Sequence record: OR538032.1
Strand: one strand, 5' to 3'
Length of the DNA stretch: 64,000 bases
The translations under genes and the position numbers were made by a program. A model generated the notes under the pieces. That model had not been told where the DNA came from, searched no databases, and was given only the letters and a program-made list of their open reading frames with translations. Positions 2,347 to 42,148 of the stretch are shown here, in pieces. Every line of letters starts with the position of its first letter. The stretch's first letter is position 1.

Positions 2347-3465
2347 ATGAAAAATCTAAAATCTTTTATGGAAGAACTTCAATCATTGAACGAAGTCTTC
2401 ATTCGTGGCGGTCGACCACGAAACGGGTCTAAGGTTCTTGCGAACGGCAAGAACATTTGGGTATGGAATAGCGATAGAGAGTTCGAACGCCTAGCGCCAT
2501 TTATCAATCGCGAACTCGGAACCGACTTTGAAGAAGAGTACGATCTAGACTCTTGGTACGAAGAGGGCGCACAAGCGGTATACGCGACGATTGAAAACGG
2601 CAAGCTAGATATGCAAGGGCAATCATCTTATCGCCCGTCTGTAGCGTCTGACACGCTTCGCAAGACTATTAAAGCCCTTAACCTGAACGGCGTGACTCGT
2701 CGAACGCAATCATTTAACCCTGATTACGATGAAGTTGAGCACGATTTCGAGACCGACCGTCGAGAATTCAACAAGAAACTGTCTCAGAAGACGTTCTATC
2801 ACGGTACATCGACAACGTTCATCGAATCAATGTTGAAATTTGGTCTGAAACCGAATCCGAATGAAACTCAATTCGATAATATTGAACATGCTGATAAAGT
2901 CTTTATTACAACAGAACTTGACAAAGCAATGTTCCACGCGACACACTCAGCGAACCGAAACAACTCGTTCCCTGTGATTATCGAGCTACGCATTCCAGAC
3001 GAAAGCAAGCTTGTATCTGACTATGACGTTGTAATTGATGTTCTGGGCGCTAATTCAGAAGAAGCATCCGAGCTTGGGTATGCTGACATCTTCTATCAAA
3101 TGCCACATTCGCGTGGTGACGGTACGAAGTATCACCGAGACGACATCGAAAGTCGATTTGGTAAACGTCTAGGCGGATTGAGTACTCGCATCGGTATCTT
3201 CGGGTACAAAGGTCGAATCCCTGCAAGTCATTTCAATTTCATCTACGCTGACGGTGACGTGATCGAAGAGTCAATGCCAGAAATGTATTGGGAAATGGAC
3301 GGCGAATTCGACATGGCAGAAATGCGTACTGAATCAGTCAACCATCGTTCGTTCGACTACTGGGATCAATTCAAACCCACTAAATTCATTGCTCACTTCG
3401 AAGAACTTTGGGATGATCTCAAAGATGAATACGAAGACGAGGAAGAAGACGAAGATTGGGACTAA
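2347..3465 (+). CDS. ADP-ribosyltransferase-fold (Tpt1/PARP-like) protein with capsid-targeting-like N-terminus
   Basis: FYHGTS...KFGLKP, VFITT...A, PVIIELRIP motifs; N-terminus MKNLKSFMEELQSLNE; acidic tail. Confidence 0.6.
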   Translation: MKNLKSFMEELQSLNEVFIRGGRPRNGSKVLANGKNIWVWNSDREFERLAPFINRELGTDFEEEYDLDSWYEEGAQAVYATIENGKLDMQGQSSYRPSVASDTLRKTIKALNLNGVTRRTQSFNPDYDEVEHDFETDRREFNKKLSQKTFYHGTSTTFIESMLKFGLKPNPNETQFDNIEHADKVFITTELDKAMFHATHSANRNNSFPVIIELRIPDESKLVSDYDVVIDVLGANSEEASELGYADIFYQMPHSRGDGTKYHRDDIESRFGKRLGGLSTRIGIFGYKGRIPASHFNFIYADGDVIEESMPEMYWEMDGEFDMAEMRTESVNHRSFDYWDQFKPTKFIAHFEELWDDLKDEYEDEEEDEDWD

Positions 3466-5363: not shown

Positions 5364-6039
5364 GTTCGAAGTGATCGATACTAGCAAACTCGATCACTAT
5401 CACGTGCGCTGTGTTACAAACACACTGTACGATAATAGAATCAAAGGGTCAAAACTAGATGGGTTCAGAGCAGAAATTACGCTAATGGACGCGGAATCAC
5501 TAGTTTTTTTAAACTCGATGAATCTATATGCTAACTTCACTGAATCTAACAGAGCAAACAACGGCATGAAGCGTATCAAATCGGCAAGATACGACTATCA
5601 TCATTATTATCAGCAACAAGAAGATTGGTTCAAATCAATATTACGTCAACACAAAATCAAAGTGAAATATCCAAACGGAGAGACTCGCGAGAAATTACCG
5701 ATGTTCTACACGTGCGGATTGCGACTTTCGAACGTTCGACGTTCAGCGGATAAAGCATGTGCAATGCTCGTTCTAGATGAGAATCAAAAGCCGAAGCTGT
5801 ATGCATTTGCAATAGGTAAACTTAGGTATGTTGTAGACGCTTATGACAAGACCGCTAACCTAAACTGTCCAGCGCAGATCGGGAAGAAGACGGTTGACGT
5901 TATTGAGTGTTTAGACTATAATGATGAAGACGATTGGAATGATGAAAATGAACTCGAAGAAGTTCACAAAAAGATTGTTATTCCAGATGTATCCGATTTA
6001 GATAAAGTATTAATGTCGTTAGACGAAGAAGAGTTTTAA
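5308..6039 (+). CDS. hypothetical protein, acidic C-terminus
   Basis: long ORF 5224-6039; ATG 5308 is the likely start. Confidence 0.7.
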   Translation: MERAEIIIPTKSVRNAGYEFEVIDTSKLDHYHVRCVTNTLYDNRIKGSKLDGFRAEITLMDAESLVFLNSMNLYANFTESNRANNGMKRIKSARYDYHHYYQQQEDWFKSILRQHKIKVKYPNGETREKLPMFYTCGLRLSNVRRSADKACAMLVLDENQKPKLYAFAIGKLRYVVDAYDKTANLNCPAQIGKKTVDVIECLDYNDEDDWNDENELEEVHKKIVIPDVSDLDKVLMSLDEEEF

Positions 6040-13907: not shown

Positions 13908-14438
13908 CTATTTGCGCCCTTTACGATTTGCCTTATTTGCTTTTCTTTTTGCTCTACGCAACTCTTTGCGTTTTGCGATTTTGTCTGCACGTCTAACTGC
14001 ATCATAATCCGCAGCACACGACGCAGCAAACGCATCAGGCTTGAAAACGGGTTCTTGACCCACGTATCCCAAGATAGTGCCCTTAGCTTCGTTATACGCA
14101 ACGTGTGAACGATGGGATGGGTCTGGGTTGATGTCAACGTGAACTTCAAACCCACGAGTACCACACATTGGCTTAACACGCAGGGCGGTTTCACCTGCTT
14201 TATAGACTTCATTCATCAAACGACTACGAATACCATCTTTACAAGACATGTACGCTGGTTCAGTTTCGATAGATTTGAATACTTGAGCGCCTTTACTACC
14301 CTCAAGGTGAATGATGATTACAGTAGCGTAACTAATCATATCACTCTTACGCTTGCTATCACACCCAACATAAATCGTACTGTTCGGATGACTGTTATTG
14401 ATAGCTGTTTCAATTGCTTCCCAATCGAACATTTTCAC
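13908..14438 (-). CDS. RNase H-like protein, YkuK family
   Basis: YVGCDS, RLMNEV, EVHVDIN, FKPDAFAASCAAD. Confidence 0.8.
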   Translation of the reverse strand: MKMFDWEAIETAINNSHPNSTIYVGCDSKRKSDMISYATVIIIHLEGSKGAQVFKSIETEPAYMSCKDGIRSRLMNEVYKAGETALRVKPMCGTRGFEVHVDINPDPSHRSHVAYNEAKGTILGYVGQEPVFKPDAFAASCAADYDAVRRADKIAKRKELRRAKRKANKANRKGRK

Positions 14439-14482: not shown

Positions 14483-15919
14483 TTAAAAGCTGTAGCGATC
14501 AACGCCTACAGTTTTCAGCATGATCTTGACTGGCTCAAGCTCACCACCTAACAGTGAAGTCAGGATAGATGGGCTACAACCCGATACCAGTGCAGTACCC
14601 GCTTCGCCAGCTTTAACCGGAACGTTGCCAAGACGACCACGAATGTTCCAGAAGACTAGTTGTGGCATTTCATAGCCAGCACGTGCGTACATAGCTTTGA
14701 TTGCGTCGAAGTTTGCACGTTCGCCGCGACCGTACCAGCCACCACCAGTATTTGCTTGGTCGAATTCCATGTCGCTCATGATAAGCAACTTAGTTGGCAT
14801 TTCTTCTTGTGAAAGATTTGCACGTTTTGCACGTTCTAACAGAACGTTGAAGCACTTACCGATGTTTGTGCTCATGTCTTCGCCTGAGCGATTCATGTTG
14901 TCAAGACGCTCTTTTAGTGAGCTACCGCGCAACTGGTGGAAGTGCGGATCGCTTGAGAACGAAATGAACTGATCTTTGAAGATGCCTTCATTGCGTTCAG
15001 CAACATAGATGCCAAGAGACATTGCAACTTGCTTACAAGTCACACCCGAACGATCTGTACCTGCGTTGATTGGCGTGCTCATAGAGCCAGATACGTCAAC
15101 AACAGGGATGATGCGCTCATCAGAGCCTTCCATGTAGTTCGGCAGAGCTTTCCATTGCTCGTTCGCTACAGACGCATTGCCATGACTAACGCTCTTAACG
15201 ACATCATATGGGAACAATGCACCAGCGTTGATCTTCGCTTCACCTTTTTGAAGTGACTCGATGTAGCTTGTGTAACGAGCAGAAGCGTTACGACCGAATG
15301 CTTGTTGATAACGAGCAGACGCTACAGATGGCAACTTACCAAAGTCGATTGCATCCCATTCTTGAGCACACATCTTCTGTTCAACAGTGTCAGACAAAAG
15401 TGCTAGAATCTTACGCCACTGCTTCGCAGTTACACCAAGAGACTTGATTGTGCGCTTGAACACATGACCGTTTTTGCTGTTTTCACGTGGGAACCACTTA
15501 GCAGCAAGACCGTTCTTGTCGTTTACAATCGCGTTTGACCACAATGTGATCGCGTCTTTCTCAAGACTTGTACCGAACGCAGAAATCAAGTCGTCGAAAC
15601 GACCTAGTTCTGGAATTTTCGACATTACAGCACGAGCTACGTCAGGCTGCTCATTACAAAGTTTAGTGAATAGAGTACGGAAAGTACCACGTTCACCCGC
15701 ACCACCGCGAACATCACGAGACCATAAAAGAATGCGTGTCGCTAGTTCGGGGTTTTCTGCAAACGCACGACCGAACAGTGTTTTAGACTGATCGTTACCA
15801 CGCATAGCAGCAATACCGAAGAACAAGTTTAGACACTCGTTACCTGAAGTGCTGTGAGTAACTGCACCGTTTGCTGTACGTGAATCGTTTGATTGCATAG
15901 CGTTCATAAATGCTGACAT
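14483..15919 (-). CDS. DUF2828 protein (TROVE/Ro60-like helical domain plus vWA)
   Basis: TANGAVTHSTSG, RDVRGGAGER, LAAKWFPRE; vWA MIDAS DVSGS, SDMEFD, VFWNI. Confidence 0.85.
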   Translation of the reverse strand: MSAFMNAMQSNDSRTANGAVTHSTSGNECLNLFFGIAAMRGNDQSKTLFGRAFAENPELATRILLWSRDVRGGAGERGTFRTLFTKLCNEQPDVARAVMSKIPELGRFDDLISAFGTSLEKDAITLWSNAIVNDKNGLAAKWFPRENSKNGHVFKRTIKSLGVTAKQWRKILALLSDTVEQKMCAQEWDAIDFGKLPSVASARYQQAFGRNASARYTSYIESLQKGEAKINAGALFPYDVVKSVSHGNASVANEQWKALPNYMEGSDERIIPVVDVSGSMSTPINAGTDRSGVTCKQVAMSLGIYVAERNEGIFKDQFISFSSDPHFHQLRGSSLKERLDNMNRSGEDMSTNIGKCFNVLLERAKRANLSQEEMPTKLLIMSDMEFDQANTGGGWYGRGERANFDAIKAMYARAGYEMPQLVFWNIRGRLGNVPVKAGEAGTALVSGCSPSILTSLLGGELEPVKIMLKTVGVDRYSF

Positions 15920-15967
15920 TGTTTATTCCTCATATTAAATTGCTGTAAAATGTCGTTTTGATGTGAT

Positions 15968-21778: not shown

Positions 21779-21853
21779 TGGTGGACACGCAGGGAGTCGA
21801 ACCCTATCTTCCTCATTGCAAGTGAGGCGCTTTCCCAATTAAGCTAACGGCCC
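21779..21853 (-). tRNA. tRNA-Ala(TGC)
   Basis: G3-U70, anticodon TGC; irregular acceptor stem. Confidence 0.8.
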
Positions 21854-23858: not shown

Positions 23859-23944
23859 TGGTGGAGCGTAGAGGAATCGAACCTCTCTTCCCATTACGGG
23901 ACACGGATTTACAGTCCGCTGCGCCACCTTGGCGCATACGCTCC
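23859..23944 (-). tRNA. tRNA-Tyr(GTA)
   Basis: long variable arm, CCA. Confidence 0.9.
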
Positions 23945-25729: not shown

Positions 25730-25845
25730 TGGTAGTCGGGGCTGGATTCGAACCAGCGACCACGTGCTTAACAGGCAATTGAAGGAGTGCTGGAGCGATA
25801 CTTGTCAGTATCATTCTTCGTGCTCTACCACTGAGCTACCCGACT
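25730..25845 (-). ncRNA. tRNA-Asn(GTT) scaffold with 41-nt motif insertion in the anticodon stem
   Basis: deleting 25778-25818 gives a regular 75-nt cloverleaf with CCA. Confidence 0.8.
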
Positions 25846-27395: not shown

Positions 27396-27517
27396 TGGTG
27401 GAGAGTACGGGATTCGAACCACGTGACCAAAAGATTTACCTAGTTAGGGTTTGCAGCATGAATGCTTATCAGAATTCTTTAACATTCTTTTGCTCTACCA
27501 GACTGAGCTAACTCTCC
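27396..27517 (-). ncRNA. tRNA-scaffolded RNA A (motif module in place of anticodon loop)
   Basis: GGAGAGT/ACTCTCC-ACCA, D arm, T arm, about 50-nt insert. Confidence 0.75.
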
Positions 27518-27523
27518 AGAATT

Positions 27524-27641
27524 TGAGGGTGAAGTACAGGACTCGAACCTGCGACCTCCGGCGTGCATAAAATGCAGCATGAAATCTTAACAGACTTCTA
27601 TTGTTTAGACCGGCATTCTAACCAACTGAACTAACTTCACC
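27524..27641 (-). ncRNA. tRNA-Asp-like scaffolded RNA B
   Basis: GTTCAGTTGGTTAGAATGCCGG...CACGCCGGAGGTCGCAGGTTCGAGTCC with insert in the anticodon loop. Confidence 0.75.
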
Positions 27642-27649
27642 ATAAAAAC

Positions 27650-27782
27650 ATATTGAGCAGGGTGCAGGACTCGAACCTGCGTCACGATCTTGAAATGATA
27701 TGCGAATTGATTGCAGAATACAAACTTAACAGCTTGCGTTTATGCTACGTGTGCTAGCCACTACACCAACCCTGCTCAATAT
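27650..27782 (-). ncRNA. tRNA-scaffolded RNA C with 14-bp terminal stem
   Basis: ATATTGAGCAGGGT inverted repeat, D and T arms, motif insert. Confidence 0.75.
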
Positions 27783-28032
27783 GTTCTTGGGCGTGCTTAC
27801 GCAGATCGATTCTTCACTACGTAAGCACAAAATCCTCTAGTTTATATTTGCCTTAGCTAATCACAACACAATCTGGAATCGTGCGCTTTAATTACGGGAT
27901 GAATGACCCGTTCGCATGTGATTAGCGTAGAACAGCTACGCACCGTTTCTTCTTCAATGTCCAAGGCAAAGAGGACTATGAATACTAGTGCGAGAAGATA
28001 TACAATCAAATTGCTCACCTCGCTTAATAAGT

Positions 28033-28179
28033 GAGAGTACATTGGTCGAGTGTAACGGAATCGAACCGTTCCCACGATCTCCCTATGATATGCGTAAATT
28101 GGTTGCTGAATATAATCATGTCTGATTACAGTATGCTACGTGTGCTGCCACTACACCAACACTCGACCAATGTACTCTC
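28033..28179 (-). ncRNA. tRNA-scaffolded RNA D with 21-bp terminal stem, paralog of C
   Basis: GAGAGTACATTGGTCGAGTGT perfect inverted repeat, D and T arms, motif insert. Confidence 0.75.
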
Positions 28180-28180
28180 G

Positions 28181-28332
28181 ATATTTTAAATGTGCGCTAC
28201 TTGCACGCCGACTGAGCGAATTTTAACTCAGCTAGTTTTTGATTGAGACCTCGTCCGCTAAGACTATTCCCTACACGCCAGAACTTATACTGGCTCTATG
28301 TATTCATTGCGGCTAACGCACATTTAAAATAT
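28181..28332 (-). ncRNA. about 150-nt structured RNA with 16-bp terminal stem
   Basis: ATATTTTAAATGTGCG perfect inverted repeat plus two internal hairpins. Confidence 0.55.
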
Positions 28333-28582: not shown

Positions 28583-28837
28583 TTAAACGGAAATGATAAT
28601 GCCGCTTTCAGTCTCACCTCGTTCAAGCGCAGCGTGCTTGATCTGAAGTTGTGATACTGCTTGCTGAAGTTCAATAATAGCTTTGTCATAAAGCTTGTTG
28701 TTCTCTTTAAGCAAAGCAATTTGATCGGTCTGCATACCAATGATGTACGTTAGTAGAACAACGTTCTCATCAGTCGTCAGCGTTTCAGGCGCTTCATTGT
28801 ACTTCTTCAGCACCGCTTCGGTAGATAGATCAGTCAT
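28583..28837 (-). CDS. coiled-coil hypothetical protein
   Basis: TAATG coupling to 57B. Confidence 0.65.
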   Translation of the reverse strand: MTDLSTEAVLKKYNEAPETLTTDENVVLLTYIIGMQTDQIALLKENNKLYDKAIIELQQAVSQLQIKHAALERGETESGIIISV

Positions 28838-29285
28838 TATTAGCAACCCATTCTAGATCTAGTGGTTCGATATATTCATCGACAAGACGAACCTCTGTAT
28901 TGATGAACATAGGGGTGATTACGTCGTCATAAGACAATGTGACGTGCGGAGTATAGTCAGGGTAATCGTGAGTACCACCGATAGAGATAAGGTCTTCGTG
29001 ACGTTCTACAAGAGCAGGACATGACATCTTAGCAACGACCGCGTGTTTACCGTCTTGCGTTTTCCAACAGTCAACTTGTTCAACAGTGGCAACGAAAGTG
29101 GTATCTACAACAGGCACATCAATTTGCTTACGACTATAAAGCACAGTCACGTGAAATTTATCTGGATCTAACGGATTTTTTAGACGAAGCGTTTTTTGCA
29201 AGCGAACTAGCTCTTGCTTACTTGCTTCGTCTAATTTGATACCAACGTAAGTTCCCTGACTCTCAAGGAACTTAGATAGTTTCAT
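28830..29285 (-). CDS. 57B: gp57B / Acb1 2H-phosphoesterase (anti-CBASS nuclease)
   Basis: HVTVLYSR and YTPHVTLSY HxT motifs, WKTQDG, EYIEPLDLEW; synteny with 57A and 1. Confidence 0.9.
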   Translation of the reverse strand: MKLSKFLESQGTYVGIKLDEASKQELVRLQKTLRLKNPLDPDKFHVTVLYSRKQIDVPVVDTTFVATVEQVDCWKTQDGKHAVVAKMSCPALVERHEDLISIGGTHDYPDYTPHVTLSYDDVITPMFINTEVRLVDEYIEPLDLEWVANND

Positions 29286-41272: not shown

Positions 41273-42148
41273 TTATTTAATCGGAGTTTGCACTGCGATT
41301 TTGTCAAGCATTTCGGTAGGTACGAATACCTTGTTGTTTGATTTCGCAAGCTCACGTAGAGTTTTTTGCTCTTCTAGGAAGCGTACGTTGTTGTTCATCA
41401 GCTTGTCAGCAACCAGTTTCTTGGTTTCTGCTTCGTACAGTTCGATTTCGCGTTGACGTTTTGAAACTTCTTCACGAGTCGCAATCTGTAGCAGGTCAAG
41501 TTTACGTTGTGCTTTTACAGTATCTTCTTGCTGACGACGTTCAGCCGATGCTTCTTGCGCAGCAGTAATCGTTTTAGGGTAAACTACGTCAGTAACACCC
41601 ACGACTTTAAGAACGAATGGCGTATCTTTCAGTTCTTGATTAAGACGCTGTTTCACGAACTGGTTAAGCTTTTCACGGTTAGATGCGACTTCCGAAATGC
41701 TGTATTCAGCAATGATTGACGGAATAATCGTGTTCAGTTTAGCTCGTGCATAACGAACGAACACATCTTGCTGTGAAATCACACCTAATTGATCAGTCTG
41801 CGATTTGAACGGCACCTTCGCAAAAACGAAGTTGTATTTCGCAGGATCGACCGCCATGGTCATTTCAACGTCGTACTTCAGCATTAGTTCGTCTTTCGGC
41901 ATGAAAGTGTCAAACTTCATTTCGTAGAAGCTGTCAGATACATCAAGCAGTACTAGACGATCTGGGTAGCGCCATGCCCAATCAAGACGGAACTTAGATG
42001 GTTGACGTGGCTCTTGAGTCAAATCGAAGCCGTCTTTAGTCTGAATCTTACCAACGAAGCCGGTTGGGATTTCAGCAGGAGTACCACAGCCAGTTAGTGC
42101 GAAGCCCAGTGCTGCTACTGAAAGAAGTTTAGCGATATTTTTAAACAT
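41273..42148 (-). CDS. SPFH/band-7 family lipoprotein
   Basis: lipobox LTGC, IPTGFVG, coiled-coil tail; TTGACA-N17 promoters upstream. Confidence 0.75.
   Translation of the reverse strand: MFKNIAKLLSVAALGFALTGCGTPAEIPTGFVGKIQTKDGFDLTQEPRQPSKFRLDWAWRYPDRLVLLDVSDSFYEMKFDTFMPKDELMLKYDVEMTMAVDPAKYNFVFAKVPFKSQTDQLGVISQQDVFVRYARAKLNTIIPSIIAEYSISEVASNREKLNQFVKQRLNQELKDTPFVLKVVGVTDVVYPKTITAAQEASAERRQQEDTVKAQRKLDLLQIATREEVSKRQREIELYEAETKKLVADKLMNNNVRFLEEQKTLRELAKSNNKVFVPTEMLDKIAVQTPIK

Follow-up and report, generated by a model that had tools for sequence, protein, structure and literature searches.

What are two adjacent genes that have the shape of tRNAs and carry one and the same insert in their anticodon arms? 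The pair, henceforth A and B, lies at positions 27,396 to 27,641 of a 64,000-nt stretch of sequence record OR538032.1 (henceforth the window), which corresponds to positions 62001-126000 of Vibrio phage PG216, a relative of KVP40; the 2.7 kb surrounding A and B match PG216 at 100% and KVP40 at 95% identity. The initial annotation took the two genes for pseudo-tRNAs that are probably selected RNAs, since independent decay would not place the same insert on two scaffolds, and pointed to a DUF2828 protein as a possible partner. Our best reading is that A, B and three further RNAs of the same family (C, D and E) are not the remains of tRNA genes and do not serve in decoding. Judged from sequence comparisons, and with a probability of roughly 0.6, they are functional non-coding RNAs of tRNA topology that serve as Y-RNA-like ligands of a Ro60-like DUF2828 protein, in an arrangement that would be a circular permutation of the RNA YrlA.

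Five tRNA-shaped RNAs and their shared module

Every RNA gene in the A-E region lies on the minus strand. ARAGORN finds 27 ordinary tRNAs at 19.3-27.0 kb of the window, and ordinary genes for tRNA-Asn, tRNA-Glu and tRNA-Asp are already present among its calls. The five RNAs and the modules of A and B are listed here with their scores, R1 being a covariance model built from 78 sequences of the family.

27396-27517, minus strand: RNA A, tRNA-shaped (Rfam tRNA 51.9 bits at 27399-27517; R1 93.1 bits; orthologue alignment)
27524-27640, minus strand: RNA B, tRNA-shaped (Rfam tRNA 52.4 bits at 27528-27640; R1 81.6 bits; orthologues)
25730-25845, minus strand: RNA C, same family (Rfam tRNA 49.8 bits at 25733-25845; R1 101.4 bits)
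27648-27787 (core 27653-27775), minus strand: RNA D, same family (R1 105.2 bits; fold z-score -6.0)
28035-28177 (core 28043-28165), minus strand: RNA E, same family (R1 93.3 bits; fold z-score -5.5)
27451-27477, minus strand: module in A, hairpin GAAUUC-UGAUAA-GCAUUC (27477-27460), one spacer base, UGCUGCAA (27458-27451)
27572-27598, minus strand: module in B, hairpin GAAGUC-UGUUAA-GAUUUC (27598-27581), one spacer base, UGCUGCAU (27579-27572)

Both A and B pass the Rfam tRNA gathering score of 29, with insertions of 46 and 44 nt in the anticodon region, and thus stand as the two adjacent tRNA-like elements first described. ARAGORN calls neither. A has the acceptor stem GGAGAGU/ACUCUCC, a D arm and a T arm with one bulged U; its anticodon stem AAAGA/UCUUU encloses the heptamer AUGUUAA, the module and a small second hairpin, and its 3' end, ACUCUCC-A-CCA, has the CCA encoded. 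B has the acceptor stem GUGAAGU/ACUUCAC and the anticodon stem CCGGU/GCCGG, and ends in ACUUCAC-C-CUCA; both 3' ends agree with what had been read from the sequence. No hairpin of A or B qualifies as a 5-bp anticodon stem with a 7-nt loop carrying U33 and R37; the stem encloses 46-51 nt. Single-sequence minimum-free-energy folds of the two RNAs were uninformative (z-scores of -1.2 and -2.6), with the cloverleaf partly broken.

The sharing of the insert was confirmed by a 27-nt ungapped core identical at 23 of 27 positions (AGAAtTCTGaTAAGcaTTCATGCTGCA versus AGAAgTCTGtTAAGatTTCATGCTGCA), whose local alignment score of 34 exceeds the maximum of 27 reached in 5000 shuffles. The initial annotation held that this insert replaces the anticodon loop. 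Its location in the anticodon region stands, but a plain replacement of the loop does not: a hairpin and a single-stranded motif lie within the anticodon arm, A keeps AUGUUAA, which resembles an anticodon loop, 5' of the insert, and B has no 7-nt loop. B had also been called tRNA-Asp-like, for which comparison with the phage's own tRNAs gave no specific support (an identity of 0.66 to tRNA-Asp and likewise to tRNA-Pro, tRNA-His and tRNA-Gly); its D arm, we assume, resembles that of bacterial tRNA-Asp.

A and B are not the sole carriers of the insert. With R1, the window yields exactly these five members (81.6-105.2 bits), and the ordinary tRNAs score 44 bits or less; Rfam holds no family other than tRNA that matches these RNAs. 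In C, the module (25813-25787) interrupts the 5' strand of an otherwise intact anticodon arm with anticodon GUU (CG-insert-UGC-CUGUUAA-GCACG). D has its module at 27738-27712, followed by the anticodon-like hairpin AUC-AUUUCAA-GAU (CG-insert-AUC-AUUUCAA-GAUCG), and E at 28130-28104, with the loop variant C-A-GACA-U-G. The acceptor stem of D is lengthened to ~15 bp by flanking sequence and the terminal stem of E spans ~17 bp, both being acceptor extensions. KVP40 annotates A, B and C as tRNA-Pseudo-4, -5 and -3 and leaves D and E unannotated, and the tRNAscan-based annotations of phi-Grn1 and phi-ST2 present these genes as intron-containing tRNA-Asn, -Phe, -Cys, -Val and -Ile.

The common element of all five RNAs is a covarying hairpin of 6-8 bp in the anticodon arm, followed by one base and a single-stranded U-N-C-N-G-C-A-A (UNCNGCAA). 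The hairpin is capped by C-U-[GNNA]-A-G. The orthologues that we gathered from 14 related phages fall into five families, and the spacing within the module is fixed across all of these. Among 30 distinct module sequences, standard pairs fill 84% of the stem cells, and 53 cells have changed on both sides. The stem reaches a covariation score of 0.607, compared with 0.18 in shuffles (none of 500 reached 0.607) and at most 0.13 when the partners were slid. Run on the 78 sequences, RNAalifold recovered the acceptor, D and T stems together with the hairpin, with compensatory changes in 21 of the 22 pairs, and added a U-A pair within the module loop; this inner pair makes the cap a GNNA tetraloop closed by U-A and C-G. 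The loop G and the U, C and GCA of the octamer (G48, U60, C62, G64, C65 and A66 in the numbering of A) are invariant across these 78 sequences from many phages. In module numbering, C8, U9, G10, A13, A14 and G15 are invariant or nearly so, and U22, C24, G26, C27 and A28 are invariant.

Compensation extends to the tRNA-like body, since the T stem of A orthologues appears as GGUGG/CCAUC, AGUGG/CCACU and ACG(U)GG/CCCGU. Compensatory changes that keep the stems argue against A-E being decaying pseudogenes. The proposal that these are selected RNAs was thus upheld: the insert is kept in orthologues from the 14 related phages, the KVP40-like comparison that the initial annotation had suggested as a check, and the hairpin and the acceptor, D and T stems covary.

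Other readings of the insert fared less well. RNAalifold run on the A orthologues alone gave an alternative pairing of GAAUGUU with AAGCAUUC, which we dropped in favor of the hairpin because the 1.081.O orthologue breaks it, whereas the hairpin has support across families. The idea that the UGAYAA loop presents an Asp codon or imitates an anticodon loop was rejected, its two central bases varying freely; a GNNA tetraloop fits best. On inspection, no complementarity was found between the hairpin loop and the anticodon-like loop that would allow a kissing interaction.

In C, D and E, as in most relatives elsewhere, it is the 5' strand of the anticodon stem that holds the module, and a normal-looking anticodon hairpin comes after it. 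By a strict test, a clean anticodon hairpin is kept 3' of the module in 40 of the 78 family members, and the A and B families are without one. Among the D orthologues the loop has 7 or 8 nt and the 'anticodon' is UUC, UCU or UCA, with a constant module, which argues against decoding as the selected function. Conservation differs among the five RNAs: in KVP40, nt-1, CZ01, QD01 and the other closest relatives, C and E keep 98-100% identity, compared with ~80-96% for A, B and D. E, at 98-100% in KVP40, nt-1 and most close relatives, falls to 79-86% in F86 and D482.

The family extends beyond the KVP40 group. Searching IMG/VR with a DNA pattern of the module plus T-loop returned 93 stretches, ~60 of which have good stems inside tRNA-shaped genes built on several tRNA scaffolds. 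These ~60 unrelated contigs include Aeromonas phage Aeh1 and jumbo-phage contigs of up to ~390 kb.

The DUF2828 protein and the flanks of its gene

The features of the window that bear on a protein partner are the following.

14483-15919, minus strand: DUF2828 + DUF7788 protein, 478 amino acids (Pfam 1e-45 and 6e-29; PHROG 850 'RNA-binding protein')
15940-15947, minus strand: octamer UACAGCAA in the 5' untranslated region (UTR) of the DUF2828 mRNA, ending 20 nt before the AUG, just upstream of a GAGGA Shine-Dalgarno sequence
13908-14432, minus strand: RNaseH_like (PF04308) protein, directly downstream of DUF2828 (Pfam 5.8e-17)

By sequence, the DUF2828 protein has no Pfam TROVE match, and since a PDB sequence search returned designed armadillo repeats only, its likeness to Ro60 came to light through a fold search. 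An AlphaFold2 model based on 42 homologues (predicted local distance difference test score of 77.6) had the Ro60/TROVE structures 9kop, 9l5y, 2i91 and 9nep as its top Foldseek matches (E-values of 3e-8 to 3e-6, template-modelling scores of 0.55-0.61). The matches are full-length, over ~500-580 columns, and include the Ro60 proteins of Thermus phage phiLo and Xenopus. The predicted fold is a Ro60-like ring of HEAT repeats with a C-terminal vWA domain. Mycobacteriophage homologues are annotated 'Ro-like RNA binding protein', and the family counts 710 phage records and thousands of metagenomic proteins, with members in eukaryotes (plant examples).

DUF2828 is the window protein found most often in the IMG/VR loci retrieved by the RNA pattern (18 loci), and it was the top-ranked neighbor family when these loci were clustered all against all without bias. 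The RNA and DUF2828 are often on the same strand and 0.1-1.5 kb apart. RNaseH_like is the third commonest neighbor of module RNAs in other phages (10 IMG/VR loci), and the order RNaseH-like, RNA, DUF2828 recurs. Because the module tracks the DUF2828 gene across many phages, we read A-E as probable Y-RNA-like partners of its product. The suggested link to DUF2828 is therefore supported by comparative genomics: the leading rank among neighbors, the fold model and the occurrence of the octamer at the flanks of DUF2828 genes above chance.

For this reciprocal test, 80 DUF2828-centered loci were fetched and 76 scored for the octamer after the stop codon. [U/A]NCNGCAA occurs within 150 nt after the stop in 52 of the 76 loci, compared with 9.4% expected, usually at +14 to +35 and often in two copies. 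The elements downstream of DUF2828 are predicted RNAs of ~60-200 nt, in which the octamer is preceded by a strand whose pairing partner lies far off and is followed by UG, often with a long terminal stem outside. We take them to be the same module with an opened loop, in a Y-RNA-like wiring. A longest-stem statistic on these RNAs was weak (10.4 versus 9.1 in shuffles) because the sequences are AT-rich, and asking for a partner strand followed by UG gave 63% versus 34%, which is supportive, not decisive. Directly after DUF2828, both mycobacteriophage MsGreen and Klebsiella phage KP2025 have a sub-threshold YrlA match with the octamer ahead of it.

The octamer is also found ahead of the gene. 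The DUF2828 5' UTR of the window reads UUUUACAGCAAUUUAAUAUGAGGAAUAAACAAUG, and the octamer likewise stands in the 5' UTR in KVP40-like phages, as in VH7D (locus L110, -29), and in four other lineages. This copy suggests translational autoregulation of DUF2828, the octamer being a possible, putative autoregulatory site. Promoter-like TTTACA (15996-15991) and TATAAT (15974-15969) sequences precede the gene on the minus strand.

Two further RNA families were seen near DUF2828. One is a conserved RNA just upstream of DUF2828 in several marine phage contigs, reading GGAGGGGAAAG(U/C)AAAAACUCGCC..., a hairpin, UUCCGCAA, then ...CCAAACC..., a T-arm-like GGUUCGAnUCC and a tRNA-like 5' part whose ...AAAAAUGAUUCUGAUAAAGGAA extends into the ribosome-binding site of DUF2828. 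The other is a separate family in tRNA clusters downstream of DUF2828, made of tRNA-Leu-like genes of 97-151 nt (AGUCCUGUGGCGGAAUUGGUAGACGC...ACAGGUUCGAAUCCUGUCAGGACUACAA) with large, variable inserts.

Marine upstream RNA: L143 ~3200-3340; L171 ~1470-1600; L178 ~5730-5860; L185 ~5690-5810; L140 ~250-390
tRNA-Leu-like genes: L145 9015-9147, 9357-9470, 9748-9871; L151 9357-9482, 9798-9948; L156 10860-10992, 11202-11298

Known RNAs of related design

Phage Ro60 proteins with adjacent Y-like RNAs and tRNA-mimic YrlA RNAs have already been described; YrlA combines a Ro60-binding helix with a tRNA mimic, and bacterial and phage Ro60 proteins bind Y RNAs encoded alongside them (PMC4201824, PMC12135203). 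A-E resemble YrlA (RF02553) in being non-coding RNAs tied, here by genomic linkage, to a Ro60-type ring protein and in having a tRNA mimic made of acceptor, D arm and T arm, with a putative docking module taking the place of the anticodon arm; YrlA is likewise known from phages and bacteria (PMC4201824, PMC12135203). They differ in topology, since A-E end at the acceptor stem and have a loop-closed candidate docking helix, whereas YrlA ends at the docking helix and has a loop-closed acceptor. They differ also in the putative docking sequence (stem plus UNCNGCAA) and in a candidate partner from the DUF2828 family rather than Pfam TROVE. The Ro60-like DUF2828 gene lies 10-13 kb from the RNAs in the window phage and 0.1-1.5 kb from family members in other phages. 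By score and by topology, A-E are not members of Rfam YrlA.

By analogy with bacterial Rsr-YrlA-PNPase, which we take as the template, the module would be the docking site that holds the DUF2828 ring, with A-E as Y-RNA-like adaptors. The tRNA-like body would then serve as effector or tether, a tRNA mimic displayed to tRNA-handling or RNA-degrading enzymes. The DUF2828 protein may in addition repress its own translation through the 5' UTR octamer, in which case A-E could titrate the protein.

The second relative is more distant in origin. In the Class I RNAs of Dictyostelia, AAG forms the 5' end and CUGU the 3' end, the terminal stem of 6 bp covaries and has its first G paired to the C of CUGU, and an unpaired CCUUACAGCAA adjoins the 5' strand (PMC7919456, PMC5054030); the search pattern used for them is GTTGRCCTTACAGCAA...GTCAACTG (PMC5054030). 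The phage module, strand-C-UG-NN-AA-G-strand-N-UNCNGCAA, would be the same element as in Class I (RF01414) with the two ends joined as a loop: opening the phage hairpin between the two variable bases of its loop yields AAG, strand, spacer, UNCNGCAA, ..., strand, CUG. In this permuted form the module has the whole Class I set of stem, AAG, CUG(U) and CCUUACAGCAA. Because their module is permuted, A and B give no RF01414 match. The short elements after DUF2828 have RF01414 as their best Rfam match over the full model length (25.0 bits in KP2025, 26.1 bits in L132), below its gathering score of 41.5.

Class I-like short RNAs after DUF2828: L132 7432-7489; L194 4051-4104; many of L111-L189, at +14 to +35 (AAG, 6-bp stem, UACAGCAA, strand + UG)

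Class I matches were absent from a 68-kb Rfam scan and turn up only when the search space is small. The phage module has one base fewer between stem and octamer, and Class I RNAs are eukaryotic, ~60 nt long and reported to be unique to Dictyostelia, with the RRM protein Rnp1A as known direct binder. The papers that were searched yielded nothing that connects DUF2828, the KVP40 pseudo-tRNAs or the Class I RNAs with one another. We treat the resemblance, which comes from comparing sequence motifs, as a lead and not a finding. A broader proposal, possible but doubtful, is that the stem with (C)UG...AAG and UNCNGCAA is a universal ligand of DUF2828-type Ro60-like proteins, older than the divide between phages and eukaryotes, with the dictyostelid Class I RNAs having the same element. 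Phages would then use three wirings: the tRNA body of A-E, a YrlA-like permuted tRNA mimic and a bare RNA of ~60 nt after DUF2828.

Ordinary and intron-containing tRNAs (RF00005) share with these RNAs the acceptor, D and T arms with conserved tRNA nucleotides, and the CCA encoded in A. They differ in lacking the 44-46 extra nt that A and B have in the anticodon arm, an insert that is not at the canonical position 37/38, and in having a usable anticodon loop, which is missing from B and displaced in A. The T4 species 1 and 2 RNAs (rnaC, rnaD), small, stable and of unknown function, are likewise encoded among the tRNA genes of a T4-type phage, roughly syntenic near genes 1, 57A and 57B, and rnaC has a T-arm-like hairpin. 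They have no R1 match and no recognizable stem plus UNCNGCAA module, and were rejected as family members for want of similarity to A-E.

Alternative explanations and what the family means

Several observations weigh against a YrlA-like, DUF2828-bound role. A and B do not reach the YrlA gathering score of 69, their sole match being one of 31.0 bits (27468-27587) that runs from the 3' half of B into the 5' half of A; we take it as a dimeric-tRNA artefact, since the YrlA authors flag dimeric tRNAs as potential high scorers. The RNAs of the window lie on the far side of the tRNA cluster from DUF2828, 10-13 kb away. Full tRNA-shaped members occur within 6 kb in only 2 of the 80 DUF2828 loci by the strict module pattern and R1, so that the association seen from the DUF2828 side is clear only with the octamer alone; the octamer is short, and the 76 scored loci are not all phylogenetically independent. 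A clean anticodon arm, for which a pure docking scaffold has no obvious need, is present in about half of the family. Finally, DUF2828 adjoins tRNA clusters in many phages, lying in or beside one in five distant cases (a mycobacteriophage and Felixounavirus, Listeria, Campylobacter and Klebsiella phages), so that part of its proximity to the RNA genes could reflect shared residence in tRNA regions. Proximity alone is thus weak evidence; a stronger case comes from the octamer at the flanks of DUF2828 itself.

One alternative is that these are tRNA genes with a new kind of short, protein-dependent intron, the module being excised and the tRNA halves joined again by phage RNA-repair enzymes to give functional tRNAs such as Asn-GUU (A, C) and Glu-UUC (D). 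Deleting the insert from C, D, E and many IMG/VR members does restore a perfect 5-bp anticodon stem and a 7-nt loop with U33 and R37, phi-Grn1 and phi-ST2 annotate the genes in this way, and RNA-end-processing genes are near: the gp57B 2H phosphoesterase (28830-29285) in the window, RtcB near DUF2828 in a Listeria phage, and metallophosphoesterase and DSP-phosphatase families at other loci. We nevertheless regard introns as improbable. B cannot yield an anticodon loop, the loops of the D orthologues drift in length and 'anticodon' as the module stays, the insertion point varies (after nt 27, 28, 29 or 38), and the phage already has ordinary tRNA-Asn, -Glu and -Asp. A group I intron is not supported for A and B, whose insert of 44-46 nt is far below group I size and has no Rfam intron match. 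Nor would an intron explain the stem and octamer outside tRNAs, after DUF2828 and in its 5' UTR.

Phage tRNAs can counter tRNA-cleaving defences, and the RNAs could be decoys or baits that act independently of DUF2828, with the tRNA-like body or the anticodon-loop-like hairpin soaking up or sensing host defence nucleases that target tRNAs. Their place within the phage tRNA cluster fits such a role, as do the authentic-looking anticodon arms of many members, notably G-U-N (Tyr, Asn, Asp, His), UUC or UCC. The invariant octamer and its occurrence at DUF2828 genes would go unexplained, however, and A and B lack a usable anticodon loop, which leaves independent decoys a slim chance. Decoy activity is not exclusive of DUF2828 binding, as it could be the effector function of a DUF2828 ribonucleoprotein.

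It is very unlikely that the module is only the footprint or target of a mobile element spread through homing endonucleases, with no function at the RNA level. NUMOD3-type endonuclease-like (16 loci) and HNH (7 and 6 loci) families are frequent neighbors, and the module sits on many tRNA scaffolds at slightly shifted positions; homing endonuclease genes are common in phage tRNA clusters anyway (T4 segB), though, and module positions are stable, not polymorphic, among orthologues of the KVP40 group. Selection at the RNA level is indicated by the structure-preserving covariation and by the invariance of the single-stranded octamer, and the link to DUF2828 UTRs would be unexplained. Least credible is the idea that these are decaying tRNA pseudogenes whose shared insert is the remnant of one insertion copied by gene duplication: the KVP40 labels tRNA-Pseudo-3, -4 and -5, the rejection by ARAGORN and the absence of CCA and an anticodon loop from B speak for it, but the compensatory changes maintaining every stem contradict it, as do the 98-100% identity of C and E in relatives where A, B and D have ~80-96% and the module's presence on unrelated tRNA scaffolds in distant phage lineages.

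The surroundings of the RNA genes include the following features.

28830-29285, minus strand: gp57B, 2H phosphoesterase, annotated 'RNA ligase'
41273-42148, minus strand: SPFH/Band-7 protein
2347-3465, plus strand: weak PARP-like match (E-value 1e-4, below cut-off)
21782-21853, minus strand: tRNA-like gene (Rfam 44.9 bits, no ARAGORN call), KVP40 tRNA-Pseudo-1
23863-23943, minus strand: tRNA-Tyr (35.7 bits only), listed by KVP40 as Pseudo-2
28566-28539 and 28474-28447, minus strand: promoter-like sites

Genes with a flavor of RNA repair or conflict (gp57B, RNaseH_like PF04308, SPFH/Band-7 and the weak PARP-like match) thus surround the RNA region. Strong inverted repeats lie between D and E (27783-27835, 27880-27945) and upstream of E (28180-28330), for example GTGCTTACG...CGTAAGCAC, and may be additional structured RNAs or processing sites of the same transcript. 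In GenBank, coding sequences for 'hypothetical proteins' overlie the RNA genes in QD01 (L014 2998-3261), F86, D482 and D479 (L005-L007), and a 432-nt 'tRNA-Arg' overlaps the start of DUF2828 in KP2025 (L194 2405-2836); these are probably annotation artefacts caused by the RNAs.

With A-E as Y-RNA-like ligands of a Ro60-like protein, a defined RNA family with a candidate protein partner takes the place of what has for twenty years been labelled phage tRNA pseudogenes or odd tRNAs with introns. DUF2828, an abundant and uncharacterized family, in turn gains a testable RNA ligand with a simple signature, a stem plus UNCNGCAA. Set beside YrlA, the family would show a tRNA mimic and a docking helix as two modules joined in two circular permutations. 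If the resemblance to Class I RNAs is real, an orphan class of eukaryotic RNAs would be joined to Ro60-like biology, and if the ligand is indeed universal, the Class I RNAs, whose function has been unknown since 2004, would be the Y-RNA-like partners of a eukaryotic DUF2828 protein.

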